A stretch of DNA of 64,000 nucleotides from Macrostomum lignano (taxonomy: Eukaryota), in NCBI GenBank assembly GCA_002269645.1, contig NIVC01000064.1, positions 248,001-312,000 of the forward strand, given 5' to 3'. Under the pieces are notes generated by a model. It was not told where the DNA came from. It made no database searches and saw nothing but the letters and a program-made list of their open reading frames with translations. The translations under genes were made by a program, and so were the position numbers. Positions 5,229 through 64,000 of the stretch are shown one piece after another (the stretch's first letter is position 1; the number at the start of each line of letters is the position of its first letter).

Positions 5229-5283
<55 letters not shown>

Positions 5284-5340
5284 GAGATAGACAGATAGAT
5301 AGACAGATGGATAGACAGATGGATGGATAGATAGATGGAC

Positions 5341-5408
<68 letters not shown>

Positions 5409-5412
5409 GGAC

Positions 5413-5444
<32 letters not shown>

Positions 5445-8650: not shown

Positions 8651-8724
8651 TGGTATCTAACTGAAGCCTAATTCACATTATTATTGTGTTCTTTTACTTT
8701 GCGCTGTGAGCCACTGGGTACTTC

Positions 8725-10472: not shown

Positions 10473-12269
<1,797 letters not shown>

Positions 12270-12562
12270 TTACTAAAGCTTCGTTTCCAAAAATTCTTTT
12301 TTAAAAAATTCAACTCGAAAATTTTCGTTTTACTATTGTCTGACGCATTTGCTGAGTAAACTGTACACAGCTGTCTGCAGTCCGTTTTTTAGTGCGATGC
12401 TTTTTTCGTTACAAAAATGTTGATTGACAGATTTCGGCTTAGGTAGGTTTCAATGCTTCTGCATGCGAGACGGGGAACTAAATTGATGAAAAACTAAATT
12501 TAGCCCTTAGCCTGGTGTCTGGTGTTTTTTTACCTTGCAACAGCTAATCTATGGAGTTAGTT

Positions 12563-16800: not shown

Positions 16801-16935
16801 TATGCTCCCACCCTCTGTGCTCCCACCCTCTATGCTCCCACCCTCTATGCTCCCACCCTCTATGCTCCCACCCTCTGTGCTCCCACCCTCTATGCTCCCA
16901 CCCTCTGTGCTCCCACCCTCTGTGCTCACATCCTC
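13840..16935. repeat. 15-bp minisatellite with 487-bp higher-order repeat
   Basis: Unit CTC(C/T)CACCCTCT(G/A)TG; marker variant CTCTTAC ends at 14340, 14827, 15314, 15801. Confidence 0.95.
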
Positions 16936-16972
16936 TCTGTGGGCGCCCCGTAGTCTCAGCCAATTTGTAACA

Positions 16973-17215
16973 CAGGTGGTGTTCACAAACTTTTTACCTC
17001 AAGAGCCAGATGGACAATCTAGCGCATGACTGTGGTCCAGAGGAGAGGAATGGGAGTAGAGTAGAAGAGAGAAGGGAGAGGAGATTAGAGAGAAGAGAGC
17101 TGAGAAGAGACACAAACCTTAAGCGGGCCGGATCGCCACTGTGAAGCTTCAAAAAACCCGAAGGCCGGATAGAGAGGCTTGGCGGGCTGCATGTGACCCG
17201 TGGACCGTCCTCTGA
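16973..17215. mobile_element. Degenerate hAT/Charlie-like MITE remnant
   Basis: Starts CAGGTGGTGTTCACAAACTTTTT, ends CGGGCTGCATGTGACCCGTGGACCG; shares GCCGGATAGAGAGGCTT with ~27220-27270. Confidence 0.35.
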
Positions 17216-30275: not shown

Positions 30276-30808
30276 TATTAAAATTCTTCATACCTTTTTT
30301 TTTACCCTGAATAACGACTTAAACTTGAAAAGTGCCGAATAGCTTTTCCTCTTTTTTTACACGTAGTCTACAGAAAAAATTGAAAGATTTTGTTTGCAGA
30401 AATTAATCAATAACTGTTTTTACCTTTAGAACTATCGCACATAAATCAATAAAATCAATTTTCCGATCAAAAATCTAAATCATGTGGTTTCTTACTTTGT
30501 TTTATTTTTTCTCTTGTTTTCCTGTTTTTTCAGCAACTGTCTTGTGCAAATATAAAACGCATCATGCCGTTCTTGAAGCCACCGCTGAGCTGCATTCTGA
30601 TAATTGACAATGACAACACGCATCCACTCTTTGTTATTTCCTTCTGACGGCGAATTCGACTGGAGAAAGTTTTTTGCATTTCAAAACTGGCAACTCTGAA
30701 AGTAGAATGTCAGATGGCATTCTGCCTGTTTTGTAGGAGACATTTCCCATGTTTTGAAGAACTGTTATTCTCTTTGAAGTTAATAGGAATCTCTGGCTCC
30801 AAGTCCAA

Positions 30809-31205
<397 letters not shown>

Positions 31206-31454
31206 TTTAATTGGCATCAGAAATAGCCACCGTGCATTTCCCATTCAGTCTGAAACACACTAAAGTTGGTCCCAGCAACGCTACTTCTAAGCATTTTAAA
31301 AAAACTTGTATAAATGATATGATCCTAAATCGTTTTAATCTAGCACACAACTATCAATATTATACTGTAATACTGATCCCGAATAATTAATCCCAAGGAC
31401 GCAAAGTCCTTATCTTGCCCTGTTTGATGGTTTTTTAAACGCATGAACTAACTT

Positions 31455-32368: not shown

Positions 32369-33476
32369 CTAAATTTTCAACCCACAAACTCGGCTCTGCT
32401 ACCTGCTGAAGTTTTCTCTTGTGCAGCACCGTTGGGGAAGAGTCAATGACGATTGTCCCCAACAACATCCCCAACAACATCCCCAACAACTTTGACTTAC
32501 TGATTTTGCTGCAATGTGGTCCGTAGACACCCATTCCGCTAGCCCTGAAGGCCCGCAGACAGGCAGAGGCGTGGGACCCGTCAATGGACGGGTTCGGCCC
32601 GAGGTAGTGTAGCCGGTCTCTGGTAAAGAAAGGGCAGTGACAAACAAAGTGCTGAGCATCTTCATTGTCGTACTCGCAAAAAGGGCAAAGTTCGCTCTCG
32701 AGGTCGCCTCGGAGGAAGCAGTGCCTGGCGAGATAGCCGTGACCGTTAAAGGTCATGACAAGGGCTCAAATATCCTTCCGATTTTGGTTCAGAAGGACGT
32801 TTCTGAGCCTGTGAGAGGGGCACGGATCCGCGGCACGAGATTGCCGGCAGTTCTGGGTTCAGCCCAGTCATCGATCTGACGATTGATGACCCTAGAAAGG
32901 ATAGTGACCAGGGGTTCAGGACCAAGGAAAGAGCCAGAGCCGCTCCCCCTGGCGATGGTGTCTGCCAACTCGTTTCCCAAAAACATCCCTAGCAGCACCC
33001 CCAACAGGATTCCCAACAGCATCCCCAACAGCATCCCCAACAGCATCCACAACAGCTTCCACAGCAGCATCCCCAACAGCATCCCCAACAGCATCCCCAA
33101 CAGCATTCCAAAAGCATCCCCAACAGCATCCCCAACAGCATCCCAACAGCATCCCAAACAGCATCCCCAACAGCATTCCAACAGCATCCCCAACAGCATT
33201 CCAACAGCATCCCCAACAGCATTCCAACAGCATCCCCAACAGCATTCCAACAGCATCCCCAACAGCATTCCAACAGCATCCCCAACAGCATCCCCAACAG
33301 CATCCCCAACAGAATCCCAACAGCATCCCCAACAGCATTCCAACAGCATCCCCGATATGTTTACTATAGTTTGTAGCGGCTCGCCTTCGGCCTGGCGAGC
33401 GAAAAGAAAGTTCGCTTGCCAAGCCTCAAGTTGCGGCCTGGCTTCTCAACTTGAGCGTCTACTTGGGCCATAGACG
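32365..33476 (-). mobile_element. Non-LTR retrotransposon 3' fragment (RNase H end + CCHC knuckle), degenerate
   Basis: GNELADTIARGSGSGSFLGPEP (RNase H C-terminus) followed by GHGYLARH..CPFCEYDNEDAQHFVCHCP; stops and frameshifts present. Confidence 0.8.
32985..33355. repeat. ~12-bp minisatellite inside the LINE RNase H motif
   Basis: Unit CCCCAACAGCAT and variants. Confidence 0.9.
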
Positions 33477-36553: not shown

Positions 36554-36876
36554 CATTCATGACACGTTTTTTAGCAATTTTACGCTGCAATTTAATCCCC
36601 CCAGCTCTACTCTGTGCGCAGAGGCTTTCACGTACTAGAAAAAGTGTCCAAAAATGCTTGCTGTGAGTCTTATCGCAGTTCTTGGCGCAGCCTTCGCGCT
36701 GGGCGACACATCCTACTCTTATTCTTACCTGGGCTGCTTTATTGACGATGACGACCGGGACCTCCTCGGCCTGGTTGGCATCACCACGATGGGAGAGTAC
36801 AGCGTAAGTTTATTTATTGTCATTACCTGGATTAATCTGAGGCACCAGATAATCAGGAGCTGTCATATCCGCCGCC

Positions 36877-37590
36877 CTCCCAGATCCTCAGTTGCTGGTT
36901 TCCCACCGCCGCTGCTCTTCCCAGATCCTCAGTTGCTGGGTTCCCACCGCCGCTGCTCTTCCCAGATCCTCAGTTGCTGGGTTCCCACCGCCGCTGCTCT
37001 TCCCAGATCCTCAGTTGCTGGGTTCCCACCGCCGCTGCTCTTCCCAGCTCCTCAGTTGCTGGGCTCCCACCGCCGCTGCTCTTCCCAGCTCCTCAGTTGC
37101 TGGGTTCCCACCGCCGCTGCTCTTCCCAGATCCTCAGTTGCTGGGTTCCCACCGCCACTGCTCTTCCCAGCTCCTCAGTTGCTGGGTTCCCACCGCCGCT
37201 GCTCTTCCCAGATCCTCAGTTGCTGGGTTCCCACCGCCGCTGCTCTTCCCAGATCCTCAGTTGCTGGGTTCCCACCGCCGCTGCTCTTCCCAGATCCTCA
37301 GTTGCTGGGTTCCCACCGCCGCTGCTCTTCCCAGATCCTCAGTTGCTGGTTCCCACCGCCGCTGCTCTTCCCAGATCCTCAGTTGCTGGGTTCCCACCGC
37401 CGCTGCTCTTCCCAGCTCCTCAGTTGCTGGGTTCCCAACGCCGCTGCTCTTCCCAGCTCCTCAGTTGCTGGGTTCCCACCGCCGCTGCTCTTCCCAGATC
37501 CTCAGTTGCTGGGTTCCCACCGCCGCTGCTCTTCCCAGATCCTCAGTTGCTGGGTTCCCACCGCCGCCTTCCCAGATCCTCAGTTGCTGG
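36877..37590. repeat. 41-bp minisatellite in WSC-C intron 1
   Basis: Unit CCCAGATCCTCAGTTGCTGGGTTCCCACCGCCGCTGCTCTT, ~17 copies. Confidence 0.95.
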
Positions 37591-37794
37591 GCCACCACCC
37601 TCTCATAGTTTGTCTTCCATTCTCCCAGAACAACCACTGCAGTAGCAAATACTAGCAAGAGGAGCGATAAACAGCCACTGCCCCGCACCACACAAGAGCG
37701 CTGATGAGCATCCCTAGCTTATAATTTGATGGTCGTAGAACGTATAAAAACCAAATTACCAATAAGAAACAAGAAAATATTAGCATTTATCAAT

Positions 37795-40239: not shown

Positions 40240-41269
40240 TGTACTTTTCATTCACCTGCGCGTAACTTTCATATCAGAGATTTTGGTATACGTACGTTTC
40301 AGCCCCAGCCACCATTATAATGTTCAGCCGCACCCACCCCATTTATTTAAAATTATTGCAATATATAGTTATCAATCTCTCCAGAGAGAGTGCGCATTCT
40401 GGTTTTTGTTCGTTTGGCTAGTAGCCGAAAAATAGTCGCTTACTGCGAAGACTCAATTTATTGCATGAACCATCAAAACAGGGAGCTCCGGAAAGGCAAG
40501 TGTGGCGGCAGGGGAGACGGAGCCAAGGCAGCAGGGGGTGCAGCAGAGCGGGAGTCTCCAGGCCTGGTCGAAGACCTGGCCGAGTCTCAACAGCTCTGTG
40601 TAGGGGGTGCACGGCGACAGGAGGCACTTTCGAAAAAGTTCACCTGCCCTATCCCGCGACCAGAGCGTGGTTACATCACTAATTGGATTTCTGCCCCCAA
40701 TGGAATAATCAGCCGCTAGGAGATATGAAATCGTTTTTTAGATTTACAACCCTCTTCTAATTATACAGAAAGCTAGTAAGTAGTATGTCGTGCACATAGC
40801 ATTTAAAAATATGTTTCTAAATTTACATTTCTTCTTTAACTAAATTGCATTGCTACTTACGACCATTTTCTTCACTAAATTGCAGCCGAACAACCTATGG
40901 GCTATAAGCAGCATCGCAATGACTCCAGACTACTGCGCCAAAGTGTGCTCTCTCGGCGGCTTCCCATACTTCGGAGTGCAGTATTATAGTCATTGCTTCT
41001 GCAGCCGGTCCTAGGGATCCCATGGACAGGCTGTGGACGAACAATGTAACACACCGTGCAAAGGCAATGCTTCGATTAACTGCGGTAGAGCGTGGCGCAA
41101 CTCGGTCTTCGCTATGCGCTACGGCTCCAGTGAGATCTAGTTGTTTTCTAAGAAATTACCTCAGTATAATTTGAATTGGAATTCATTCATTACCGACAGT
41201 TGATTACGGAATTTGAATCGATTGAAAATAAAAATTATCGATTAATCGTTGAGACATTCTACAACCTAG

Positions 41270-41507
41270 CATTCACGTCCTGCAATCCAACATCCACGCC
41301 CTGCAATCCAACATCCACGCCCTGCAATCCAACATCCACATCCTGCAATCAAACATCCACATCCTGTAATCCAACATCCACATCCTGTAATCCAACATCC
41401 ACATCCTGCAATCAAACATCCACATCCTGCATCCAAACATCCACATCCTGTAATCCAACATCCACATCCTGTAATCCAACATCCACATCCTGTAATCCAA
41501 CATCCAC
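41270..41507. repeat. 21-bp minisatellite, left part (split by EnSpm element)
   Basis: Unit CTG(C/T)AATCCAACATCCACATC; resumes at 50911. Confidence 0.93.
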
Positions 41508-41996
41508 CCCAGTGGGACTTTTCCGTCCGCCCCGATGTCCGCCCGCGCCTCCGCCCTTTTTTGGGCGACGGCCGCCCCATGGAGCTACGTGACCTCCGCC
41601 CCGGCGTCCGGGGCGGCGCCGCTGGGCGGAGCCTGATGAAATTTGCTCATAAGCCTACTATTAGTAGTAGAATTAGCACAAATTTTTTTTTTGCTGCATT
41701 CACTCAGCATTTTTTTCACGATTTTTCTGCTTTTTGGATTTTTTGATTTTGGGATATTAGCGATCACTGGCTTCGTAATTAAGGCTATTAGAATGATTCA
41801 AAGACTTGTTCGCTTCGTTTTGTTCCTACTGGTGCAGGCAACTCCGTAATGTATATTTAAGTCATAGGTAGTTCGTGTATTTTAATTATTTGCAAGTATT
41901 TTAAGGCATTAAAACATTTTATAAATAAGCGCAATAATTCTTTAAAAAAGAAATTACAAATGAATATTAGCAAAATCAGGAGTGAAGCGAGTCGGC

Positions 41997-42224
41997 AGGG
42001 GCGGATTGAGGGGGGGGGCATTAGGGCGGCCGCCCCCTATCAAAATAGCTTGATAAAAAATATTTTTTTTACCTAAGTTTAAAAACCTAAGTTTTTTGTG
42101 CATAGCTTCATTTTTTACTTTTAACACACTTTTTGCGCCCCCCTAGCTTAAAAATGGCGCCCCTCATACTCTTGATGGCGCCCCCACACTGGGACCCCCG
42201 AAATGAAATTCCAGATCCGACACT
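41997..42224. mobile_element. Possible Harbinger-like MITE nested in the EnSpm element
   Basis: AGGGGCGGAT start and AGATCCGACACT end (imperfect TIR); no TSD resolved. Confidence 0.35.
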
Positions 42225-42491
42225 TCGAGTCAGTTGTTAACTTTCCTCCACTTCAGCCAGCAACAGTAGCGGCCCGTGCAACGATCAGAAGTTTTTAATC
42301 AAATAGGGGAACAAATGAACAAATGAACGATGTGAGGTCCCCCACCCTATTTTACCGACTTGAAACCCCGGACCTATGCGTATCTATGCATAACTAAGCA
42401 GCAACTCTTCTAAGCTCAGTATCTTACAAAAGCACCTTAATTAGCCTATAGGCTTTCACATTTCTGATACTATTTTAACTATATTACGCAT

Positions 42492-44846
42492 TTAATCGTC
42501 ACTGTAGTCGGAAGGACACCGAAACTCATCGTCACTCGACCCCATCAAATCATCCATTTCTCGAACAGCTCTGTTTACATTCGCACTGCGGCGCTTTGCT
42601 GCCCTCTGCTGCTGAGTAGGAGCTGGCCGCTTCTGGGCCCGCTGCGGCGTAGCAGATGTGGTGGCCTGCGAAAGCCCGCTGGCTTGTGGAGTCGAGGCTG
42701 CGCTTCTTGCGCTGATTGAATTTGATGGCGTCATGGCACCGATTGTGTTGCGGCGATGCGACCGCCCCGAGATTCGGTCAGCTCCGTGCCTCAGGTACTG
42801 CCGCACTTGGCTAGCGACCAGATCCTGAGACGGCCTGCCGTCCTCCGCTCTGGTGCCGTAAATTGCTGAGACGGCATCTGCAATTCCAACAAGGGATGCA
42901 AAATAGGTCGATAACTATACAAGATTGTGGTATAAAATGACTATATCCGTGTAAAATAAGCATTATAATTATAATTGTTTTTATGGGTTACAGATTGCAA
43001 GAAGGGTTAGCTGCATTTAGCTTAATAACAGAATATCGTACCTTGGATGTAGCCCAAAAACTTGGATTGAAACGCGAGCTCCCGATCGGATAGCTCCGTG
43101 GCTGCACCAGACTGGCACACCCTGTTCCGCATGCCCTGTCCATTGAAATTGACAAGTGCTTGCAGTCGGGGCGTCAGGATGACATTGACCATGTCGGTGA
43201 CTGCAGTTGCCCAATCTCCGCGCCGGCATAGACGGAGATGATTAATCTGAGGGAAGTGACAGTAAGTTGGGTTCCAGCTTAATTTCGATTAATATAGAAA
43301 CGAAACTACTTTTACTACTTACTCCTCAGAAGCAGTAGCAAGTAGGGGAATTTTTTAATTAAAATAGGTTAACACTGAAACTTACCAAAGTCAAAACTCG
43401 CTCAGAAGGCAAATCAGCGAGGAAGCGAGCATACTCCTCCAGTGAACTCAGAGGTTCAAACAGCAAGCTGGCTGATTGCCCTGCCCGCTGATCCAGACGG
43501 GCCTGAATTCCAGCCAGTATGTTGATTATCTGCTGCTGGCTTTCCTCCAGTTTCATTGTCCGCTGGACCAGCTCTCGCAGCTGAGATACATGGAGGAATA
43601 CGAGGCCGTCAGCGGAATTTAAGGGCATTGGCGCAATAGACTGAAGCTGTTCTTGCAGCCTCTTGATTGGGCCCGGCCCGAACTGCAAGCGGACTGGCCG
43701 ATCGTCTGTGCCAGCAGCAGGTGTGCCAGCATCAGCAGCAGTGCTCAGTAGAGTTTTTTGAATCGTCGACGCCTCTGCAGCTGCCTTTGCCGCTTCCGCT
43801 TTTGCCACTGCCGCCTTCGCTGCTGCCGCCTTCGCCGCCGCCGCCTGTGCTGCTTTTGCCGCTGCCGCTTCCGCCGCTGCCGCTTCCGCCGCTGCCGCTT
43901 CCGCCGCTATCGCTTCGGCCGCTGCCGCTTCCGCCGCTGCCCTTCGGCCGCTGCCGCTTCCGCCGCTGCCGCTTCCGCCGCTGCCGCTTCCGCCGCTGCC
44001 GCTTCCGCCGCTGCCGCTTCCGCCGCTGCCGCTTCGGGCGCTGCCGCTTCTGCCGCTAAAGCCTCCGCAGCTGCGGCTGTGGAGGCCGCACTTTTAGAGG
44101 CTTCGATCTCTTTCGCTGCCGCAACCGCTGCTGGGGTCTCTGCGTTTCTAGCAGCAGCAAATGCCGGTGGAAGTGGCGGCAATGCAGAGCCTTTCGAAAT
44201 CGTCGAATTCGTCGTGGCAACAAATTCAGCATCAGACTCCGGATCGCTTTGAAAGAAATCATCCGTGTTTGAGGCTGATCCAGTTGCCTCATTCTAAATA
44301 GGAGGATGTGGAAGGCAAACTACTCACTGAACCACTCATCCACTGACTCACCCACATACTGACCCACTAGTTGACTTGGAATAACAGCTTACCCTTATTT
44401 GATAACGGCTGCGGGCCCTTCTCCAATCTTCGCGGGTGAAGACGCGTGGCTGCACTTTCTCTAGTACATCGGCTAGCCGTTTCTTCTTCCTAATTAATTC
44501 TCTTGCGTAGCTGAAGCTGCTGGCCTCCAGACAGTCTTCCATAATAACCTAAAATGATTTGTAGGTTATTTCTTGAATTTTTATGCATCAATTTCATTAG
44601 TTCATTTTTTTTAAAATCACCGAAAATCAGAAAATCAATAAAATATTGTTAAATTCTTACCTGAACAATGTAAGCTTCGTAATACTTTTCGTTGTACAGC
44701 ACTTCACATTTCCATTTTAATGTACAATGGCTCCTATCGAGCCACTCCTGCTCTGTCAGATTTTTTAGATGTGAAGGCAGAATCACATCCTCTTCCATCA
44801 TCTCAACTACTTGTCTGTCAATTGCAAAAACAACTAAAAATTTCAT
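42492..44846 (-). CDS. EnSpm accessory ORF2 (DUF4806-like), 5 exons, one frameshift
   Basis: Exons 44846-44661, 44548-44393, 44293-43386, 43246-43042, 42877-42492, all GT-AG. 1-bp deletion near 43941 in the (EAAAA)n repeat; C-terminal LVNFNGQG and VRQYLRHGADR motifs. Domain name is from recalled motifs, not a search. Confidence 0.75.
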
Positions 44847-45176
44847 TTTTAAACTTAAAAAATGATTTTTTGGATTGACAAAGCACGCAGATCGCACGAC
44901 AATTGCACGGGGGAAGGTAGTAGAGCAGTTGGAAGTTAAGAAGACAAGTCATAGTTTCAAATATCGGGGTGGCAGTGGCACCATTCAGCAAATTAGCCAA
45001 TGGGATCCGATTGCGGTTGGCCCGCCCTTTCGCTGGATTGGCTAAGCGCTCAGTGCGGGCGATGGCAGAGTGTTGGTGTTGTTCATCTTACAATTTTGAT
45101 TAGAAATTCTTGATCATTCAAATTTGATTATTTGTTTAAAATTTTATTGAACGAAACGGAAACGTAATTATACGTC
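44847..45176. promoter_or_regulatory. Candidate bidirectional promoter of the EnSpm element
   Basis: 330 bp between divergent ATGs; CCAAT 44997-45001, GC box CCCGCCC 45021-45027, ATTGG 45037-45041. Confidence 0.55.
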
Positions 45177-47141
45177 ATGGCATCAAGGAGCAAACGAAGA
45201 AGAGCGGATGATTTCCTAATGACTAGGTTTCTCCGGGACGATGTCGGCTATGGCAAAGCAATGCCTGAAGCTAGCCCTGTAGAAGTTGATGTCACGGAGG
45301 AGCCGACAGAAACTGCTGAAGTTGAGGAAGAAGAAGCTGGCTTTGATGAGCTTCGGTCGTTGAGCAGCACTGACGATGAAGAGGAAGAGAAACCCCAGGA
45401 TATTCGCTCAACAGAGAAGAAACTGCTGGACTTGCTGGTCAGTTTCTTCACCATCTTTGGCTATTCCAGACCAGCGGCTATTTTCCTACTGGCCGGACTT
45501 CGTGCGATTGATTTGCCAGCACCTAACTATAAAACAGTCGAGCGAATTCTGAAAGAAGATCAACCCACTGGAAAGACAACTCCAATGGGCAATGGACACT
45601 TCCGGTATGTGTCGATTCTTGATAACCTGCAGTTGCTGCTCAGCCAAGGTCTGCTGCGACTGATGCCCGAGAATGAGCACCGTGATGATCAAAGTTCCAC
45701 TCCTAAAGTGTTTAAGTTCGAAGGAATCGTCAATTGCGATGGTTTACCACTCTACCATTCGAGTGGATTCGGACTGTGGCCTATTTTAATGAAAATTCCT
45801 GGCGCATTCGCAAAGCCTTTTCCGGTGGGAGTTTGGGCCGGCGTTGGAAAACCTCCACTTTTGCCCTACCTTCAAGAATTTTGCCAAGAGGCCACAAAAT
45901 TTCTTTCTGGTCCTGTCACAATTAGTAAAGACGTCTCCATTACTCTATCAACAATTTATTTCGTTTGCGACGCCCCCGCCCGAGCATTTTTAATGGCAAC
46001 CTTGAATCACAACTCCTATCATGGCTGCAGCTATTGCCGAGCGGTAGGGCCTCGTGTTGCAAACCGTGTGACTTATGCACTGACGGCTGGAGAAAGCCGC
46101 TGCGGAAAGATCTATCGCGCAGGGATGGAGAGGAACCAGGAAACAAAAAGCAGGATTCGTTCTCCGCTACTGGATTTGCCGAGCATAGATTTTGTCACGT
46201 CTTTTCCTCTTGATTATCAGCATGCTGTTTGTCTTGGTGTTGTTCGCAAGCTAATGAACTTATACTTTGGCAAAGGACCAGCCGGTGAATGCAAGCTTAA
46301 TCCGACACAGTTGCGCCGAATGTCGGATAAGATCACTTTGGTTGCTTCGTGGACACCGTCAGAGTTTCAGAGACGGCCTCGGCGAATTGATATAAACTTA
46401 CAGTACATGAAAGCAACAGAATTTCGCCAATTTTTACTTTATTTGGGACCGATTCTGTTTCGAGGCTTCGTGCAGGAAAAATATATTAATCATTTCTTGC
46501 TTCTGCACTTTGCTCTATATGTCTACTCTGATAGGCGGCTGATCGACTTGTATGACCACGCTAAAAAATGTATTGAAGAATTCGTATTAAAAACAGCGGA
46601 ACTTTTTGGACAGCAGTCCGTTAGTTATAACATTCATGCTTTGCTTCATTTAGATCAGTTCGTGCGGCAACACGCAGATATTAATTACTTCTCAACGTTT
46701 GCATTTGAAAACTATCTGGGTGCAGTGAAGCGAAGCATTAAAGTCACAAGGCACCTTGCAGCCCATTGCGTCCAACAAGTTTTTAAGGTGAGAAAGCAAA
46801 CGCTGCTTCAAAACCACAGCATTCCGGCACTAAGATACCGGCCGACAGCAAGTGACAACTGCTGTTTTGTCGATGAAACCTGCAATACGTGCGTCTACAT
46901 CGACAGCCTTTCAGCAAGTGGACTAGTTTCTGGCAGGATTCTTCTTCCCGAGAGTGACGTTTACTCGTACCCATACGAATCCCTCACGCTTGGAATTGGG
47001 ATTTACCGCCTTACATCGATTGTCACTAGTGGTGTGCCGCAACGCAAATGCTGGATTTGGCCTTCAAAAAATCTGGATACCGAAGCAACTGACGCAGAAA
47101 GTCGTTTCCACGTTGTGCCTCTAACGGGCGACAGGGATTAG
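45177..47141 (+). CDS. EnSpm/CMC-type DDE transposase, 654 aa, uninterrupted ORF
   Basis: Motifs VNCDGLP, FVCDAPARAFL..HNSYHGCSYC, PLDYQHAVCLGV, KATEFRQFLLY, YNIHALLHL, FAFENYLG. Confidence 0.9.
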   Translation: MASRSKRRRADDFLMTRFLRDDVGYGKAMPEASPVEVDVTEEPTETAEVEEEEAGFDELRSLSSTDDEEEEKPQDIRSTEKKLLDLLVSFFTIFGYSRPAAIFLLAGLRAIDLPAPNYKTVERILKEDQPTGKTTPMGNGHFRYVSILDNLQLLLSQGLLRLMPENEHRDDQSSTPKVFKFEGIVNCDGLPLYHSSGFGLWPILMKIPGAFAKPFPVGVWAGVGKPPLLPYLQEFCQEATKFLSGPVTISKDVSITLSTIYFVCDAPARAFLMATLNHNSYHGCSYCRAVGPRVANRVTYALTAGESRCGKIYRAGMERNQETKSRIRSPLLDLPSIDFVTSFPLDYQHAVCLGVVRKLMNLYFGKGPAGECKLNPTQLRRMSDKITLVASWTPSEFQRRPRRIDINLQYMKATEFRQFLLYLGPILFRGFVQEKYINHFLLLHFALYVYSDRRLIDLYDHAKKCIEEFVLKTAELFGQQSVSYNIHALLHLDQFVRQHADINYFSTFAFENYLGAVKRSIKVTRHLAAHCVQQVFKVRKQTLLQNHSIPALRYRPTASDNCCFVDETCNTCVYIDSLSASGLVSGRILLPESDVYSYPYESLTLGIGIYRLTSIVTSGVPQRKCWIWPSKNLDTEATDAESRFHVVPLTGDRD

Positions 47142-48624
47142 ATTAGATATGAACTGATTCGTAAGTCAATTTTAACCCAACGTTTTTTTTTCAAGGTTTC
47201 TAAACAAGTGTATTGCCTAACTTATTGAAACTCGTATCATTTCCCACAGCTGTTTTGGAATCATCGATCAGCTGCTTTGATTTCTCGACTCCGCCTCGCA
47301 GGGCTCGCATGCATCTACCGAAAAAAACTACTAGCTTATTCGACTGTGAACTGGCAATATCAATACACAAAGACAGACTGAAACATCGAGAACGCTAGAC
47401 TGTTTTTTTCTCTGTTCTGCTTTGCTCTCTTTGTTTTGATTTGTTGAACCAAGATTTATAGCTATATAGCTAATAGAAATCGTGGGACCCATTTTATTCA
47501 TGGTCTGTGAACCCTGCTGGCCTGGACATGCCTGGATCAAACAGAGGCTCGAAATAAGCTTTTTTCTTATGGGGGTGGGGTATAAAGAGACAGAGGCAGC
47601 TGTTGTGGCCATAAAAAATGTCGGCTCGACAGGCTTTGAGTTGCTCCTCTACACGATATATCTCTCTCGCAATTCAGTTCGAAATAAAATTGATACATAC
47701 TTCCCCACCAACACACTGCCCGCTTCTTTGCTATCTATCAAACAGGCCTTTTCTGTTCGAACTCAGTCTCCCATAAAGTAAACAACTATATAACTTAGAA
47801 GCAGGTCTGTGGGCTAGAACTGAGCTAAAATCTATCTGCTTCCATGAATGGCTTCGAAAAGGAACACTTTTGGCGCAGCCAGAAATTTGAATCCACTTGG
47901 AGAGTGGAGGGAGTGGGCCTGTACAATATCGAAAATATACGATTCCCCATTCCCTTGCATTTTCTGTATCCCCTGTCACCCTTTTGCTGCGTTAACACCA
48001 GTACACCAGTGAATAGAGAGGCCAGCTAAATTTCCAAGACACTACAGATCCGAACCGTCAAGAGAGCTTTTTTCTGAAAATAAAGTTCGTTCATTTCTTG
48101 ACACTGAGTTAGGTGTGTCAATAATTTCAGCATTAACGACAGTTAGATTTATCAAATTTGAGTGTTGAGAACTATGTGTTTGAATAATTAAACTAACTTT
48201 TTATCAATATGTTTCATTAACTGGTTACTAACTCTTTTAAGGCTTATTAAGCCGTTAATACCCATGTGAATGTTACAGTAACTATATTTTTTACGTTTTA
48301 ATTACAAAGTTTAGCCTTTCAACAACAACGCTTAATCTGTTTTGCATACTTGTCCTGTCTTACATTTACTACAATGAACAACAGTATCTGCTTGTAACTA
48401 TCTATACTTCGAGATTTGTGTGTCGTCTGAAACGAAAGAGTTGATATTTTTAGCGTGAGTTACAAACGTACAAATATTAAAAACTCAATAAAAATTTACA
48501 ACCGCAACAAATTCACGGGGCGCTTTCATTAGGCAAAAATTTCACTTTGCCGAAAAGCACTCTCTTTCACTAGGCCGAACCTTATGTACCTCGTAAGAGC
48601 GTGCTCGGCAATGTGAAGTTCCTC

Positions 48625-49060
48625 TATCCTCTCTACCCTCTCTCCTTTCTACCCTCTCTTCTCTACCCTCTCTTCTCTACCCTCTCTCTTCTCTACCCTC
48701 TCTCCTCTCTACCCTCTCTTCTCTACCCTCTCTTCTCTACCCTCTCTCTTCTCTACCCTCTCTTTTCTCTACCCTCTCTCTTCTCTACCCTCTCTCTTCT
48801 CTACCATCTCTCCTCTCTACCCTCTCTTCTCTACCCTCTCTCTTCTCTACCCTCTCTCTTCTCTACCCTCTCTCTTCTCTACCCTCTCTCTTCTCTACCC
48901 TCTCTCCTCTCTACCCTCTCCTCTCTACCCTCTCTCTTCTCTACCCTCTCTCTTCTCTACCCTCTCTCCTCTCTACCCTCTCTTCTCTACCCTCTCTCTT
49001 TTCTACCCTCTCTCCTCTCTACCCTTCTCCTCTCTACCCTCTCTCCTCTCTCCCTATTTC
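48625..49060. repeat. CT-rich 16-20-bp minisatellite inside the EnSpm element
   Basis: Core CTCTACCCTCTC; a GA-rich tract follows at ~49560-49850. Confidence 0.85.
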
Positions 49061-50910
49061 TTCTTTCTCTTCCTTCTCTCCTCTCCTCCCTCTCTCCCTT
49101 CTCTCGTCTCTTCCCTCTTTTCTCCTCTTGTCTTCTTTCTTATCTCATCTCTCTCTGTCTCTCATGTCTCATGAGCTTGCACTGGATTTTTCATCTGGCC
49201 CTTGAGGAAAAAAGTTTGCCAGCCTCTGGGTTAAAGCTTTGAGTCAGCTTTGCTTCTCGCAGCGCAGCACAGCGAGCCAATAGGTCGGATTACCTAGCTC
49301 TTACTTCCCTGGCCAATTTAGACTGCCATAACTTTGCCCCAAATAAATATATTTATTTCAAACTTGAGTCGATTGCGCCTTGATATGTTTTCTGTCTAAA
49401 CATGGAGTCTCAGCTTCATAACTCAATCAACAACAACAACAACAACAAAATACTCAATAACTCAATCAGGACAGGACAGAAACTATGAGCATGTGAAGTT
49501 TGCCTGATTTTTATCTATTCTTTCGCCTGTGGAGTAGTAGAGCAGTTAGAGAAAACAGGGAAACATAGAAAGCTATAGAAAACAGAGGGAGAGAGAAGAG
49601 ATGAAAAAGCAGTAGACAAGAAGACAGATAGAGCAGCAGAGAGGACAGATGAAAGGGATGCAGGGCAGATGCAAGAGAGGGAGGATGAAAAAAGGGTACA
49701 GCGGAAGAGAAGACCGGGATAACAGAGTGAGAGTATAGACAGATCGAAGGGGGGAGAACAGTGTGAACAAAGGAGAGAGGAGAGTAGACAGATAGAAGGG
49801 ACTGAGGAATAGGTTGAGAGAGGACAGATGGAGAGAAAAAGAGACAGTAGAATCTTGCTTAAATAAACCGACGGAATCGAAATCGTAGACCTTGTTTGGT
49901 TTTTCCTAACTTCCATTGCACTAGCTATTTAAATATTTTTTGTTAGATTTTAAATCAAAGAAGCAAAAGAGATACAGGGTTCCAAATTCTGTGGGTTTAA
50001 ATTCCAGATGTTAAAGCAGCGTGTTTTCACCAAAACAAATATATAAATAATCAATAGTTAGTTTTGCCTGCAGAGAAATATCCAAGCTGCGCAACGGCAT
50101 CCAGGAATAAAAAATCTGCGATTTTAGTGGACACTACTCAAAGCTGTAACAGCTGCTGCAGCATTTTTCAGATCATTGATTATGGATTTCTGGCCAACAG
50201 GAACAGCATGAAGTCAAGCATTGCAGACACTACTCGTAGTTTCACCCAGTGAGGAGCACTTAATTCTACTTCTAAGGGGCATTTTAAGCCGGCATGTTCG
50301 ATCAGCAGGTTTAGCAGCAATTAAAAATAGATGGCAAAGACAAGCTCACTTTCTAAAAGCGCAAATATTTAATATTTATCGTCTATTTGATGCTTTTAAT
50401 CTTCTTTCGACTGCAAACAAAAATTTGTTCTCGGGGGCCTGCAACTCTACGCTACTAAAAGTAGTCTGATGCGCATTTAAATTTTTATGAAACTCTACAC
50501 ATCTTTCCGGAAAAATAATTTCACAATGTTGGCACTAGGCAACAGCAAATATTTCCCTAACGTTTATTGTAAAGAGTAGTCACCTATTATTGTGATAAAA
50601 AACGGTTCTCCCGCTAAGCTGTAAGGGCAATGCTATTAAATAAAGCTGCCTGGAACATGAAACATGCCAAATTTAGGTTGCCGCCTCATAGGCCGCCGGG
50701 CGATCACCGGGCGGCTTCGATTAGGATTTAAAAAATCGTACTTATTAAGGCGAAATAAAGTATCACGATTACAAAATCACAATTTCTCATTGAAAAATCA
50801 GATCATCCTTCATTGTAAAGTGAAAATAAAAATATTTACTGACTGCCCTCACAGGCGGTCGCGAGGGCGCACACCGCCCACTGTACGCCCCACTTTGTTG
50901 TCCCACTGGG

Positions 50911-51060
50911 ACGTCCTGCAATCCAACATCCATATCCTGCAATCCAACATCCACATCCTGCAATCCAACATCCACATCCTGTAATCCAACATCCACGCCC
51001 TGAAATCCAAAATCTACGTCCTGCAATGCAACATCCACGCCCTGCAATCCAACATCCACC
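50911..51060. repeat. 21-bp minisatellite, right part
   Basis: Same unit as 41270-41507. Confidence 0.93.
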
Positions 51061-52125
51061 TCCCCAAATCAATGTGGCATGTTCATTGCTCGTCCATCTT
51101 CCGCAGACAACGGCTGCCGCTCGTCGTACCGCCCGAACCCGAGCCAACCCCAGCTGGTGGTGAGCAGCTCCTACTCGAAGGCCACCTACTAAACGGAAGC
51201 CATTCCGGATATCGCCGGCTGCATTCAAAGATGCAGCACCGCCGCTAGCAGCTGCCTGGCGGTGCTTTTCAACCGACAGGCCCGGCTCTGCCACCTGCTG
51301 AAGTTCTCTCTGGTGCCGCAGGCTCTGAGCACCGTCGATGGAGAGTTCTATGCTCGTGGATAAAATCCTTTTGTATTCTCGCTGTAAATTAGGATTAATT
51401 TTCGTTCACTTTGATCGGTTCGACAGCTGTCTGCGATGTTCTGGCTCTCTGGAGACTCCGACAGTAAAGGTGTTTTTTAACGATTGAACAAATCAGAAGT
51501 AATCAATTTGCTTTTCCTGAGAGCTTTAAAAATTTTACGTACGGACGTTAGGACTCTCATAAAATACTCTTGACTAACATGTTAAAAATATTCTTGCAAT
51601 ATCCTTGATCCTTTGAAATTTAAGTAAATGTAAGAGAGTCTAGTTATATAGCTAGCCAATCTGCATCCTGGTCCCCCTCTGCGACCCATCCAATTTCTGC
51701 TGCGCTTGTTCTTTAGAGGTGATTGATAAAACAAAAAATTATAAGACAAGTTTTTTTACTGTATATCGATCAAGAATAAAGCGATGGACCTTTTTTATGA
51801 CCCTCTCGACAAAGAAAATGCTACTGCTTATCATTTCATGATCTATCGATATGATTGATATGGCATGCTTCTACTGACACTGGTTCAAAGCAAGCAAATA
51901 CAACCAGCAATTACAGTGTTTGAAGTGTCTGCAGCCTAGCGCGTGACCCAACCAAATTACAAGTACAATGCAGCCTACAACGAAACCTGTCGATTTGTTA
52001 TCCATAACATTTCTAGATGCTAAAGCAAGATAATGTTTGTCGCAAAATAAACTTTCGGTGTAGATATAGAACCGAAACACATCTTGAGGCCTCGACCGGT
52101 TAGCTTTCAATATCTTGTAGCCAAA

Positions 52126-55100
52126 ATGCCAGCCGCCTGTCGACTTTTTCTAACCGTTTCTAGTCTGTTCTGTGCAGCATCATTGCTGACTTCAACAGCC
52201 GATGCAACCGATGCAGCCGCTGCAGCCGCTGCACAGTTCCTAGCCAGAGGCCACGTCAACGGCTGTCCATTCTCGGTGCTGGATCTCGGTCGGGGACGCG
52301 ACTCGGCTGACGAACGACTGCTGATGGAGCCGCTGATGTGCGTGACGACAAGTCCTGACGAATTGGCGCCGCGTTTTGACCCGGTGCTGCGGCGCTCCTA
52401 CCTGAGCGTGCCGGTGCTTTTGAGCGACAGCGAGTTGCTTGCCCATGCGTCTCGTCAAGTCAACCGACCGGACTTGGGGACGCTGAGCCCTGCACGAATT
52501 ACCGAAGTTAATACCGTGGAAGACGGATTGCCAACCAGTGTCATTGTGGCATTGGACTTTGTGTGGACTCCGCCTCAGCCTGTGGGATTTCTATGGCTGG
52601 GATGTCGAAGAGAGGTTGGATGCAACGAAATGTAAGACGCAGCAAGTGGCACGGGCGCAATCAAGGCTAAAGTAGGAGGCATAGCTTGTAGGAGTACACA
52701 CGTAGTCTCTTTTCAAACAAGAACTGTTGGTTGGTTCATTCCTGCTGTTGTAGACAACAAAGACACATTGGTTTATGGCTTTTGCACGAATAGAAAAACG
52801 CAAAAAATTGGTTAAGGCTGTTGTGAAATCTTACTGATGAGTTAACGACAGAGAATACCTAGCTTTATGTAAATTTTACATGGGAGAGCTGTTGTATAAA
52901 CCGAACTTACCTAACTTTATAACCAACTCAGACTCAGAAGCCATCAGTTAGAAGCCATCGAGGGTGTCCTGCTGTCGGCAAAACTCCTGGGGCTCTCCAG
53001 CAATGCCAGCACGACATTCACCTATCGACTGATGGTGCAAAATCAAACCTTGTCGATGTCAAACGGCGGAAGTCGAGACGTTGCGCGTCCGCCGACTTGT
53101 CCTCAACTGCGACCTCTGAAAACTTTAGAGTCGGAAAACTGCGCCATCCAGGTTTACCAGAGGCTGGATAGGAGGGGTCATTATCTAGTTGAACCGTTGT
53201 TATGCTACGATAAAACGATCGCAGAGACGATTCTTCGTAAAGACAAACTCCGAGGCACAAACTACTTGCGTCTGACTCTTATGCTGCACGACGATTTTGT
53301 TCTGAACACAGTGAAAACTCATCTGGAGTACCTCAGACCCATCTCCGTTGAGTTTATGCGACTTTGGCAAGCTAAAGCTGTCGTCGATTCGGAATTTAGT
53401 AATCACTATCAGATTGGAACGTTGTTGATCTCAGAAAACAGCAGCTTAGCTAAAGTGCAAGTGCACTGCAGCAACTGGTCAGACTGTGCAGCCTTGCGGT
53501 GAGACATCTGTCTTGGATTTACCTACCATAGGTTCACAGCTGTCATTTATTCATCTCGGGTTGTTGTAAAAATCGACCGAATTCATTTTTAATAAAGGGG
53601 AAAATACATGTACTTTCACCTGCTCAGGTGCGCCATCACCACGGACCCAATCTATTTTTGGCGTCACGTCAAGTGGACCTACGAGACGACAGTAGATGAC
53701 ACCTGTCTGCACACGCCAGCTACCGGCCCAAAGCACTCTTGGCAGGTGCTACGCGAAGCTAAACCGATTTCAGCTCGATCGAGACGCCAGCTCCAATGCA
53801 ACGGCACACCTTGCAAGTACGTGAAGTACAGAGGCGGCAAAGAGTACACCGTTGTGCTTCAACGAATCCGAGGAAGCGTCAGTTTCCAGCGAAACTGGAC
53901 CGAGTATGAGAACGGTTTCGGGGACGAGACAGATTTTTGGATCGGTTAGTTCAAATTAATATGCGGTTAGTTCAAACCCTTTTTAAAACTGATTTGAGCG
54001 ATCTTTGATCCGCGGAACTACAGCTAGCTACAGGGTCTTTACCTTAATCCGGAACCCGGCCAGAAAATTCTACCAGGAACCCTGGTATTAAAACCCGACC
54101 ACAATCCTGTACTATGCTAATTATCTATCCACTTTGACTCTCTTCCTTCATCCTTCTTTTATCTGTCCACAGTTCTTAGCTGACATGCCATTTCCAACGG
54201 TCTCATTGTTGGCAAAGTTGTCTGACAGATCAAGTAGCTCTGTATGTCTGACTCTCCCCAATATTACGTGTACATGTAAGATATACACTATATGAGTCAC
54301 TTATGGTGAACACGCTGCGCAGTCGAGGGGGTTATAGTGGACGAACTGGCGGAGATTCTCGGGCCTGAAAACGTCGGTAAGATCCGAGTTTATCCTGTGG
54401 TAGGTGAGCCTGTCCTGAGTAAAGGGTTCGATTGCGTGCACATCACAGATGAAGTGTTCTGAATTCTCAACACCATAGCCTGAGAGGGTCGCCAAAATAT
54501 CCGCCCAAATGTCCAAGCGGAGAATGTGAGACTGGCTGCTAGGAAAGGGCAGCGAAGGACTGTCAACAGTCGGGATGGGGGGGGGCGTTAGCCCCCTTTT
54601 TCTGTGCTCTGATCCCACCCAACTGGTTAATCGGAGTGATGACGGCCACGGGCAGGGGGCAATGAAGGATTCAGTCGATAAATCTCTCGTTGCCATAGTG
54701 CCCTACCTATGCTACACGCATATGATGATATTTCAAGCCTTTTACACTCAGGTCTAGAAGCGGTGCACGCGCTGAGCAAGTTTGGAATCACTCTGCGAAT
54801 CGAGCTCAAACTATTCAATGGCACTGAACTGTTTGGAGAATTTAATGAATTTCGAGTTGGAAATTCAAGTACAAATTATCGAATGACGTACTCAGAAATG
54901 GCAACAACTGCTGGCTTCTCAAATATGGGATTCGATCCACTAATCAAGCACCAGGGCATGCAGTTCTCAACTTTGGATCGGGATAACGACGCCAATGAGA
55001 ACTCGTGCTCCAACAACTGGGGCAGAGGTGGCTGGTGGTTCAGCAGCTGCTACGATTTCTACCCAACGGGGCTGTTTCCACTCAGCAAGACGAGTAACTA

Positions 55101-55182
55101 TAGCTACATGATTTTCGGAGACGTTCAACGGCTGGCCTTTCGACAGGTTCGACTAATGTTCGAGGCCGATTTTTGCGGTTAG
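52126..55182 (+). CDS. Secreted fibrinogen-related domain (FReD) protein with two unassigned tandem N-terminal domains, 4 exons, ~606 aa
   Basis: Exons 52126-52631, ~52932-53498 (acceptor 52932 or 52938), 53628-53944, 54752-55182; phases 2,2,1 join in frame. Signal peptide; VVLQRIRGSVSFQRNWTEYENGFG..FWIGLE, FSTLDRDND, GGWWFSSC; AATAAA ~55267. Confidence 0.88.
54300..54520 (-). mobile_element. Short LINE 3' fragment in FReD intron 3
   Basis: ENSEHFICD..FTQDRLTY resembles EDAQHFVCHCPFFTRDRLHY of the 32365-33476 fragment. Confidence 0.5.
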
Positions 55183-55276
55183 AAACCACTAAGAAGATTG
55201 CAGAAGCTCAGAAGTTATTCAATAGAAATTGACCTTTATATAATATAAATTGTTTTACTTCTCTCAATAAAATCTA

Positions 55277-61227: not shown

Positions 61228-63449
61228 ATGCCAAGTATGCCATCTGTAGCCATGATGGACAATCAAATTCTTGATGTGTGGAAAAATAATCTCAATATTG
61301 GCATGAAGAGGCTGCGGACTTTGGCCAAGAAGTATCACTATGTGGCTATTGTAAGTAGTATATTTACATTTCTCTAGTTAAGAGGTCGCCCATGGGACTG
61401 ATGGAGCATACAGAATCTATTAATAAGTTCTCTGCTTTCTGCCACTCTAACAGGACACGGAATTTCCAGGCGTTATCGCCCGACCCTATGGCACATTTGA
61501 GAACAACCAGGAGTACCAATACACCAACTTGAAGGCCAATGTAGACATGCTGAAGCCAATACAGATTGGTTTCTCATTTTTCGATGCCAACGGCGAATCG
61601 GCGGATCCTCCATCTACTGTGCAGTTTAACTTCCTATGGAATCAGGACAGCGAAGCGCACGCTCAGGACAGTATCGACTTGCTCAATCTGTCTGGCATCG
61701 ATTTTGAAAAGCTCAAAGTTGAAGGCATCGATTCTGCCGAATTTGCTGAGCTGTTTATTAGCTCAGGGTTGGTGTTGAATGATCAGGTGAGAGCGCACTT
61801 CAATTATTTTCAGGGAAAACGACACATATACTAACAAAATTTGCGTCATATTAACGACACATTACACCGACATACCGACAAGATTAGCGACACATTCACC
61901 GACAAGATTAGCGACACATTTACCAACAGTATTAGCGACACATTCACCGACATACCGACAAGATTAGCGGCACATTCACCGACAAGATTAGCGACACATT
62001 TACCAACAGTATTAGCGACACATTCACCGACAAAATTAGCGACACATTCACCGACAAGATTAGCGACACATTCACCGACAGTATTAGCGACACATTCACC
62101 GACAGTATTAGCGACACATTTACCGACAGTATTAGCGACACATTCACCGACAAGATTAGCGACACATTTACCAACAGTATTAGCGACACATTCACCGACA
62201 AGATTAGCGACACATTTACCGACATCAATAGCAACCTACGATGTCGTAATTTACCGACATCAGCGACAAACAAGATTTACAAGATTAGCGACGCAACAAA
62301 GTTCATTGTAGCTTTAAATTTTGCCATTGTTAAGCAATCAAACCAAAAGGCTCTATAATTGTAACCAGACATCACTTCCATTCTTCCTTCGCTCTCAGAT
62401 CACTTGGCTGTGCTTTCACTCGCCATTCGACTGGGCCTACGTTATGAAGCTGTGCACAGCCCAGCGCTGTATGCCGGCCTCTCTGCAAGAATTCACCGAA
62501 AGTCTCAGCTTATTCTTTCCCAATATTGTCGACATTAAAGTGCTGATGAAACGGTGCAAAAATTTGAAGGGCGGCCTACAAGAGGTGGCCGATCAATTGG
62601 ACGTGCCACGCATTGGTTCTCAGCATCAAGCTGGCTCCGATGCTAAAATCACTGGAGACGCCTACTTTAAAATTATCGACGTAAGTTAGTCAAGCTTTGA
62701 TGTTCTTTGATCTTTGCCGCTATCATTTAATCTTTTTAGATTTTAACAGCCATTTTTTCATCTTACCGCCATTATTTCATCTCGCCGCCATCCTTTGATC
62801 TCGCCGCCATCCTTTGATTTTGCCGTCATCCTTTGATCTTGCCGTCATCCTTTGATCTCACCGCCATCCTTTTGGTCTCACCACCATCCTTTGTTCTCAC
62901 CGCACCGCCATCCTTTAATCTCACCGCCATCATTTTGATCTCACCGCCATCCTTTGATCTCACCGCCATCCTTTGATCTCACCGCCATCCTTTGATCTAA
63001 CCGCCATCATTTTGATCTCACCAACATCCTTTGTTCTCACCGCACCGCCATCTTTTGATCTCACCGCCATTATTTGATCTCACCGCACCGCCATACTTTG
63101 ATCTCACCGCCATCTTTTGTAATTGCCGCTCTACTTTGATCTCAGCGCCACTTTATAATTGATCTCAACCAACCGTCCCTCAATATCAATCCCGCCGCAG
63201 ATGTACTTCGAAGGCAAGGTGGACACCAGTCTGGTTGGCTTAGTCTGGGGCCTGCACGAGAGCGGCAGCTCGACTGGCAACGGCATCAACTCCTGGGTGC
63301 CCACCACCGTTGCTTCGTCAATCGTCAGCGGTTACGACGGCTCCTCGTCCTGTGCGGGCGCCTTGAACGGCTCCGGCGCCGGCAGCGCCGCCTCCAGCCA
63401 GCCGAGCTCCCACCGGGCCAGCCCCGTGCCGGCGCAGGAGTCCAGCTGA
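61228..63449 (+). CDS. CNOT7: CAF1/CNOT7-family DEDD deadenylase, 4 exons, ~328 aa
   Basis: Exons 61228-61350, 61454-61786, 62399-62680, 63201-63449, all GT-AG phase 0. Motifs [56 protein letters not shown]. Confidence 0.92.
61850..62290. repeat. 24-bp minisatellite in CAF1 intron 2
   Basis: Unit GATTAGCGACACATTCACCGACAA. Confidence 0.93.
62745..63150. repeat. ~19-bp minisatellite in CAF1 intron 3
   Basis: Unit CTTTGATCTCACCGCCATC. Confidence 0.9.
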
Positions 63450-64000
63450 ATAATTTAATAGCTTATTGACATAATATTAACAATACTGAAGCCATAATTA
63501 TTTATCTACTAAAGCTTATGTTATTTGCAATGGCGCATGGCACGTGAACAGTTGGCTGAAGTTGCACGAGTAAAATAGTCCCTTTGAAAACGTTACCCAC
63601 TAGTGACTCTATCGACTCTGGGGCGATTCTTGGCCTAGGAACCGTTTTCATTGGGATTATTTAAGTCCCTATATTGGGTGTTGTTCACTTAGATGCTCGT
63701 ATTCTATTATTTTTGTTTGGATTCTAAACAAACACGTTGTACTTTAGTTTCTTCATTAATATACTATCATTAATTATAGTTCCAGCTCTCCTCACCTCTT
63801 ATCACCTCTCCGCAGGTCATAATATTATTTTTAGAATAACTATATCTATTTTATAATAATATTTAAATAAAATCCTAATGATTACTTTAGCTTTAAAATG
63901 GTAGTCTAAAATCACTGTTAAAGTGACTTACCCTAATTGTAAACCGCTTTGTAGAATGCCCTTTAAATCACCTTTTGTTGTTACTGAATCGCCTGTAAGA

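Follow-up and report, generated by a model that had tools for sequence, protein, structure and literature searches.

A predicted secreted lectin in Macrostomum lignano

We analyzed a 64,000-nucleotide stretch of the genome of the flatworm Macrostomum lignano (NCBI GenBank assembly GCA_002269645.1, contig NIVC01000064.1, positions 248,001 to 312,000 of the forward strand; hereafter the window), in which a four-exon gene encodes a protein with two N-terminal repeat units and a C-terminal fibrinogen-related domain (FReD). Our results suggested that the product of this gene is a secreted, N-glycosylatable multidomain lectin, with the FReD as a glycan-binding head and the repeat units as a novel scaffold, and that it belongs to a family of modular soluble lectins confined, according to the databases, to Macrostomum and a few relatives. 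The probability of this reading is estimated at roughly 65%. The novelty lies in a FReD/C-type lectin family whose N-terminal domain was undescribed before and whose FReD is truncated.

The 606-residue product was identical to PAA92085.1 (BOX15_Mlig010465g2, Macrostomum lignano), a "hypothetical protein" in GenBank that UniProt labels only as "Fibrinogen C-terminal domain-containing protein". The GenBank annotation goes back to transcripts, assembled under guidance of the genome (StringTie, TACO) and supplemented by a de novo transcriptome, and not to ab initio prediction (PMC5730564). An earlier interpretation made from the bare DNA (the sequence-only reading) had left room for exons 1 and 2 belonging to a separate transcript. 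Because the annotation is transcript-derived and the predicted coding sequence equals that in GenBank, this doubt was answered, and the exons form one transcript model. All splice sites were canonical (donors GTAAGA, GTGAGA and GTTAGT; every acceptor ends in CAG). Intron 1 has alternative in-frame acceptors at 52938 and 52941, and the acceptor at 52932 reproduces the GenBank protein. With exons of 506 and 567 nucleotides (nt), introns 1 and 2 are both phase 2, and each is placed 3-4 residues past a C-x5-C pair, as the sequence-only reading had described; the unit motifs that it quoted and the RSRR sequence at 53776-53787 were likewise present. The features of the gene and its product (amino acids, aa; predicted local distance difference test score, pLDDT) are as follows.

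52126-55182 (+): gene with four exons; start ATG at 52126; product of 606 aa
52126-52631 (+): exon 1, 506 nt; ATG, signal peptide and core of unit 1; ends in GCRREVGCNEI, phase-2 donor GTAAGA
52632-52931 (+): intron 1, phase 2, GTAAGA...CAG
52932-53498 (+): exon 2, 567 nt, symmetric phase 2-2; tail of unit 1, inter-unit linker and core of unit 2; ends in CSNWSDCAALR, donor GTGAGA
53499-53627 (+): intron 2, phase 2; cuts through helix 127-139 of the modelled domain
53628-53944 (+): exon 3; donor GTTAGT
53945-54751 (+): intron 3, phase 1, at FWI/G inside the FReD
54752-55182 (+): exon 4; TAG stop codon at 55180-55182
55266-55271 (+): AATAAA, likely polyadenylation signal, beginning 84 nt past the stop codon
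aa 1-27 (+): signal peptide, putative cleavage after A-D-A
52234-53049 (+): repeat unit 1 (aa 37-208), interrupted by intron 1; matched by a family profile that excludes its own units
53098-53706 (+): repeat unit 2 (aa 225-384), predicted folded domain, interrupted by intron 2; alpha/beta model and profile match
53707-53796 (+): linker between unit 2 and the FReD (aa 385-414); pLDDT < 50, model residues 162-202
53776-53787 (+): RSRR (aa 408-411), minimal furin-type motif, found in Mlig010465 copies only
53797-55179 (+): FReD (aa 415-606), interrupted by intron 3; PF00147 match

The only hydrophobic 19-residue window was at the N-terminus, both in the window protein and in nearly all of its relatives, and the window protein contains nine N-x-S/T sequons.

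Two homologous repeats of an undescribed domain

The sequence-only reading had claimed two N-terminal units with shared spacing, and our analysis revealed that they are true homologous repeats. First, the offset between Cys72, Cys160 and Cys166 of unit 1 and Cys260, Cys348 and Cys354 of unit 2 was exactly 188 residues, and the motifs quoted for the two units fell on one ungapped diagonal. This diagonal scored 25 over 110 residues (z about 6; the next-best offset was -31), a score that was reached by none of 20,000 shuffles, and by two of 20,000 once the Cys pairs were removed. Second, a profile restricted to other family members matched both units independently: unit 1 at aa 37-208 (78.9 bits, E-value 2e-26, profile positions 5-178 of 197) and unit 2 at aa 225-414 (149.5 bits, E 5e-48). 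In total, 73 unit instances were identified across 27 family sequences of at least 60 aa.

Direct comparison of the two units gave a smaller signal. BLASTP aligned a single 40-residue stretch with 13 identities (E 2e-4; equalled in 5 of 3,000 shuffles), the semi-global alignment score was not significant (z 1.5), and single-sequence AlphaFold2 prediction of the whole protein gave a pLDDT of only 31. These three results would fit the idea that the resemblance of the units arose by chance or from faulty annotation, and that the N-terminal half is filler without structure. However, the independent profile matches, the shuffling results, the number of unit instances, the confident alignment-based model described below and the conserved exon phases have already refuted this idea, which retains practically no probability.

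A model of unit 2 was obtained by AlphaFold2 with an alignment of 27 non-redundant units (A1), spanning aa 225-426 of P0001 (202 residues). The overall pLDDT was 83 and the predicted template modelling score (pTM) 0.73, with 137 residues above 90; model residues 1-150 (aa 225-374) had a pLDDT above 90. In the model, 11 strands and 4 helices make up a globular, mixed alpha/beta domain about 160 residues long, while for unit 1 the evidence is that of sequence. The earlier estimate of about 190 aa per unit was partly upheld: it agrees with the period of the repeat (188-192 aa), but the predicted fold covers only about 160 aa and is followed by a linker.

We found no recognized domain in the units, in agreement with the sequence-only reading. 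Pfam identified only Fibrinogen_C in the whole window protein, and a per-member Pfam scan of the 27 units at E up to 10 gave nothing consistent. No PDB sequence matched the N-terminal half by phmmer or by profile search. A Foldseek search of the unit model against 350,542 PDB chains returned no credible fold match (best E 9e-3, template modelling score (TM) no higher than 0.25); the top matches, kinases and ribosomal proteins, were dismissed as noise. The sole significant fold neighbour was A0A7S7YF07, an uncharacterised protein of Medusavirus stheno T3 in the BFVD set of predicted structures (Foldseek E 1.1e-4, probability 1.00, TM 0.52 for the 202-residue query, root mean square deviation 4.3 A over 164 columns). 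The viral protein appears to share the fold of the unit model, but it is only 14% identical, unannotated, and from a giant virus of amoebae, and here a prediction is compared with a prediction. Judged against PDB and BFVD, the unit is provisionally considered a candidate new fold.

A family with two kinds of lectin head

An exhaustive HMMER search with the N-terminal 378 residues against 1.84 billion representative proteins identified 11 proteins at E <= 0.001, and all those with a named source were from M. lignano. Word-indexed protein searches, with the whole protein or with the N-terminal 378 aa, recovered only the gene's own 90% cluster; the whole-protein run was probably swamped by low-complexity words. 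The family showed two architectures, and Fibrinogen_C and Lectin_C were the only Pfam domains in its members. Two units plus a FReD were found in approximately seven divergent paralogue groups (Mlig010465, Mlig009643, Mlig024225, Mlig027058, Mlig015530/003017, Mlig015675 and A0A1I8HWT0), which were mutually 23-43% identical except for Mlig009643 and Mlig024225 (71%). Six units plus a C-type lectin domain were found in Mlig001546/001890/001894, with Lectin_C carried by P0003, P0014 and P0015. A six-unit relative with 49% identity was present on an intron-less, transcript-like contig from sequencing run SRR30276812. Thus, the units are shared with C-type lectin genes, which indicates a modular, genus-restricted family of predicted lectins instead of one odd FReD protein.

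The units also occurred in two short metagenome fragments; a metagenome scan with the tighter alignment A2 found no relatives. A contig from JGI metagenome 3300040801 (Ga0450804_3087745, designated L002) contains a unit-1-like open reading frame (ORF) at 117-803 that ends in CGEVNCSEIL and a unit-2-like ORF at 800-1438 that ends in CSDWEACDLLK. The ends of the two ORFs coincide with those of exons 1 and 2 in the window gene, and identity to M. lignano paralogues is 34-44%.

One member, P0004 (BOX15_Mlig027058g1), loses FReD similarity past Pfam position 116, and its C-terminus (aa ~510-598) is unrelated and includes a hydrophobic stretch. Possible explanations are a frameshift, decay of the copy or a splicing error in the model.

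The literature search found no paper on Macrostomum FReD proteins, on this domain or on this architecture. Thus, the proposal of a new FReD architecture held, with the two-unit layout extending across about seven paralogue groups. We also considered Mlig-tuf2, which combines an IgV-like domain with CLECT (PMC12732829); no link between it and the family of the window gene could be made.

Exon register and duplication of the units

The exon structure suggested how the units were multiplied. In the repeated region, each exon combines the tail of one unit with the core of the following one and has a phase-2 intron on either side. Because of this symmetry, a single exon duplication adds exactly one domain and keeps the frame. 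A phase-2 intron 3-4 residues after a C-x(4-6)-C pair was a family mark present in the window gene and in P0009, P0021, P0010, P0025 and P0015. P0010 and P0025 have the same four-exon plan as the window gene, with two phase-2 introns and then the phase-1 FWI/G intron (the last resolved only in P0010); both phase-2 introns were resolved in P0009, and only the first in P0021. This plan was kept in paralogues that are just 23-43% identical, and the matching ORF ends in the environmental relative L002 follow it as well. In the six-unit gene (P0015), there is one unit per exon, and the seven introns that precede the tail-and-linker exon are without exception phase 2, with six at unit boundaries and one inside unit 2; the sole phase-1 intron precedes the C-type lectin exon.

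Since the phase-2 register is common to the divergent FReD paralogues examined and to the six-unit C-type lectin gene, the exon-level duplication proposed earlier was borne out, and amplification of the scaffold units by exon duplication appears to be the best reading of the gene structures. However, the sequence-only reading had each intron follow its unit, and this needs to be corrected: the junction of exons 2 and 3 falls within helix 127-139, at model residues 133/134, and not at the end of the domain. One register would build both the two-unit, FReD-headed proteins and the six-unit, C-type lectin-headed proteins, with interchangeable heads.

An N-terminally shortened FReD

The identity of the head domain was clear. 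The PF00147 match had 122.4 bits (cut-off 22) and an E-value of 3.2e-35, with aa 425-575 aligned to profile positions 40-193 of 221. Among PDB sequences, 68 FReD sequences were related at E <= 1e-10, the best being fibrinogen gamma, FIBCD1 and ficolins 1-3 (E 1e-25 to 1e-22). In the alignment with fibrinogen gamma, the D-x-D of the calcium site was kept (DRDNDANENSC vs DNDNDKFEGNC), as were the GGWW motif and the P-domain pair Cys549-Cys563 (GRGGWWFSSC vs G-SGWWMNKC).

The sequence-only reading needs a correction on the FReD too, as the Pfam match begins only at profile position 40 of 221. Similar starts were observed in the window protein and all paralogues (profile positions 34-40 of 221), and alignments to PDB sequences set in near chain residue 40. 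In place of the beginning of subdomain A and its disulfide, there is a short C-x(4-8)-C loop, which is C415-x4-C420 in the window protein. The N-terminally shortened FReD is, on these alignments, a predicted structural variant of the whole family. We also examined Cys384-Cys415 as the canonical first FReD disulfide, which would place RSRR inside the FReD. This candidate was rejected because residues 358-384 are the conserved tail that follows every unit, including those of the C-type lectin genes, and are confidently folded in the unit, and because residues 386-426 are a low-confidence linker.

Two further cysteines, Cys359 (53629-53631) and the penultimate Cys605 (55174-55176), were present in the Mlig010465 copies only and absent from every paralogue. 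They might be bonded to one another, or link separate molecules by disulfides.

The RSRR motif and proteolytic release

The linker between unit 2 and the FReD (about 30 residues) varies in length and sequence among paralogues and is probably disordered according to the model (aa 385-414). RSRR lies in the segment aa 386-426, which had a pLDDT below 50, so that the motif is likely to be exposed. Furin-type convertases cleave ANGPTL3/4 between the coiled coil and the FReD. By analogy, a furin-like proprotein convertase might cut after RSRR411 in the secretory pathway and free the FReD head, as the sequence-only reading had proposed. Such cleavage would be consistent with the presence of the R-x-R-R motif at aa 408-411, with its position in a flexible segment between unit 2 and the FReD, and with its retention in three of three Mlig010465 copies, but this retention is uninformative because the copies are about 98-99% identical. 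Moreover, none of seven paralogues (P0002, P0020, P0005, P0004, P0009, P0023 and P0010) had R-x-[KR]-R in the corresponding linker, and composition alone would by chance give about 0.33 motifs of this kind per protein. The tally set against cleavage counted none anywhere in the six-unit proteins of M. lignano, while RTKR is listed in one inter-unit linker of P0003; this motif and RGKR inside a unit of P0004 were the only two others in the family. Given the absence from the paralogues and the chance expectation, proteolytic release of the lectin domain is unsupported and we consider it unlikely; RSRR is most likely a paralogue-specific or chance motif, and not a design feature of the predicted family.

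The likeness to ANGPTL3/4 is restricted to the basic R-x-x-R motif, placed in both cases in a flexible linker shortly before the C-terminal FReD. In contrast with those proteins, the N-terminal part of the window protein consists of two globular alpha/beta domains (one of them modelled) and not of a coiled coil, and the motif is unconserved in the family. No coiled-coil family was matched by Pfam in the window protein, and the unit model is globular.

Gene copies, selection and possible function

Three copies of Mlig010465 were identified (g1, g2 in the window, and g3) that are about 98-99% identical. In each of them the 606-codon frame is intact, the splice sites are canonical and no cysteine is lost. 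The window and the g1 locus (L004) align in synteny with 93-98% identity. Between the window gene and the g1 copy (L004 10001-13053), exons differ by 0.6% and introns by 1.4%. For three other copy pairs of the family, the ratio of non-synonymous to synonymous change (pN/pS) was 0.15, 0.81 and 0.10; the values of 0.10 and 0.15 indicate that family members are under constraint.

In the proposed lectin, glycans would be bound by the FReD head, probably in a calcium-dependent manner; as with ficolins, FIBCD1 and tachylectin 5A, acetylated sugars might be its specific ligands. The novel units would provide a spacer, a presentation device or a partner-binding scaffold. The family as a whole would form a modular set of soluble recognition lectins, similar to snail FREP/CREP/GREP proteins with their immunoglobulin superfamily (IgSF) scaffold.

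Several points weigh against this proposal. The FReD lacks the first ~35-40 canonical positions and has Tyr where fibrinogen gamma has His after the second P-domain Cys; because of this truncation and replacement, ligand binding could be altered or lost. The changed codons between g2 and g1 comprise nine non-synonymous and one synonymous, which are small counts; they fit relaxed or diversifying selection rather than constraint, and the ratio, which departs from those of the other family pairs, is indistinguishable from neutrality. The unit fold was predicted from just 27 related sequences, the claim of no known fold covers PDB and BFVD, and one BFVD protein (A0A7S7YF07) has the same predicted fold. 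Finally, the lectin role of the window gene is itself a prediction, and no paper on this gene was found.

The codon changes also bear on whether the window copy is a redundant duplicate drifting to a pseudogene in the partly polyploid DV1 genome, with RSRR and the extra cysteines being functionless. The three near-identical copies, the high redundancy of the assembly (PMC5730564) and the degenerate FReD C-terminus of the paralogue P0004 are all compatible with such drift. However, every copy has kept its 606-codon frame, splice sites and cysteines, exon divergence (0.6%) is below intron divergence (1.4%), and the gene model is transcript-based; pseudogenization is therefore regarded as quite improbable.

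A more serious alternative is that the molecule is the same but its role is not defence: it may be a fast-evolving, genus-restricted secreted protein of reproduction, surface, mucus or adhesion, whose head binds the worm's own or a partner's glycans. The confinement of the family to Macrostomum-like organisms, the low identity among paralogues (23-43%), the nine non-synonymous and one synonymous changed codons in the copy pair of the window gene and the pN/pS of 0.81 in another pair would all fit this possibility. In the PMC7336406 supplement, the orthogroup of the paralogue Mlig024225.g1 bears the mixed label Non-Specific|Tail|Testes; however, it comprises 73 members, and the FReD is probably all that defines it. 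Furthermore, Mlig010465 was not found in the examined portions of the supplements of PMC5816591 and PMC7336406, and no tissue is tied to the window gene. A non-defence role is considered less probable than not.

Returning to the recognition lectin, a bolder version of this reading is that the unit represents a new extracellular fold with its origin in the Macrostomum lineage or close to it, which spread by phase-2 exon duplication and became the shared scaffold of flatworm-specific, soluble pattern-recognition lectins with exchangeable FReD or C-type lectin heads, invented independently of, and convergent with, snail FREP/CREP proteins. We put it forward only tentatively.

Invertebrates have repeatedly used fibrinogen-related lectins to recognize non-self, and the module attached to these lectins differs between groups: IgSF domains in snails, collagen in ficolins and coiled coils in angiopoietin-like proteins. 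Our results add a further FReD-attached module, an uncharacterised predicted alpha/beta domain that is exon-duplicated and common to C-type lectin-headed sister genes. If the fold prediction is true, the unit would be a new extracellular domain family for domain catalogues, and a clean example of symmetric-phase exons copying a domain despite a mismatch between exon and domain boundaries. To our knowledge, flatworm humoral immunity is almost unstudied, and M. lignano is a tractable laboratory flatworm with transgenesis and RNA interference. If the family is truly a recognition system, it would open flatworm humoral immunity to experiment and offer a first handle on humoral recognition in a model flatworm that is free-living. 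Secreted orphan families are no rarity among flatworms. A reproductive or adhesive role, if true, would still make this a useful case of a fast-evolving, genus-restricted secreted family.

Other features of the window

A 9.4-kb segment at 41449-50910 is extra in the window relative to the syntenic g1 locus. It lies inside a 21-nt minisatellite (41212-41560 and 50827-51133) and holds an intact 654-aa ORF at 45177-47141 (+) that matched no Pfam family. The segment, for which a check for terminal inverted repeats was negative, may be a mobile element or a copy-specific insertion. Two neighbouring genes were recognized: a CDC20/Fizzy-type WD40 protein at 4365-8700 (+; PF24807, E 3.5e-63, ORF 6382-6948) and a CAF1-family deadenylase at 61800-64000 (+; PF04857), the g1 locus also having a downstream CAF1 gene. 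Within intron 3, an antisense 131-aa ORF at 54301-54696 (-) had no Pfam match and no second copy in the window or in the compared loci, and is probably spurious. Long satellite arrays were located as follows; they yield very long repetitive ORFs in several frames and on both strands, some up to 1001 aa, which are not genes.

5114-5584, 6838-8664, 10361-12304, 13948-17029, 30634-31244, 32789-33473, 36654-37655 and 48578-49242: long mini- and microsatellite arrays

Comparison with known lectin families

The head of the window protein resembles canonical FReDs (fibrinogen gamma, FIBCD1, ficolins and tachylectin 5A) in its 122-bit profile match, its D-x-D and GGWW motifs and its P-domain disulfide. 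The rest of the protein is different: it has neither the collagen stalk of ficolins nor the transmembrane anchor of FIBCD1. No Gly-X-Y run was present in the 606 aa, and no Collagen Pfam match was obtained. Judging from the sequence, membership fails both for the ficolins, with their collagen stalk, and for the angiopoietin-like proteins, with their coiled coil.

The closest analogy is with the snail VIgL family, in which IgSF domains are combined with FReD, C-type lectin or galectin heads (PMC5433772). Pfam scans of the whole protein (E up to 1) and of the 27 units (E up to 10) gave no Ig-type match. Because the defining IgSF domains are absent, the window gene is not a snail-type FREP/VIgL member. 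The module here is instead a predicted alpha/beta domain about 160 residues long, members with a galectin head were not encountered, and the FReD is without the first part of subdomain A. On the other hand, the general plan is close to that of the Biomphalaria glabrata FREPs, CREPs and GREPs (PMC5433772): a secreted protein with an N-terminal non-lectin module (one or two copies in the snail, two or six here), a variable linker and a C-terminal lectin head. In both animals the same N-terminal module is joined to alternative heads, either FReD or C-type lectin, in a multigene set of divergent paralogues, and this likeness is one of analogy and not of homology.

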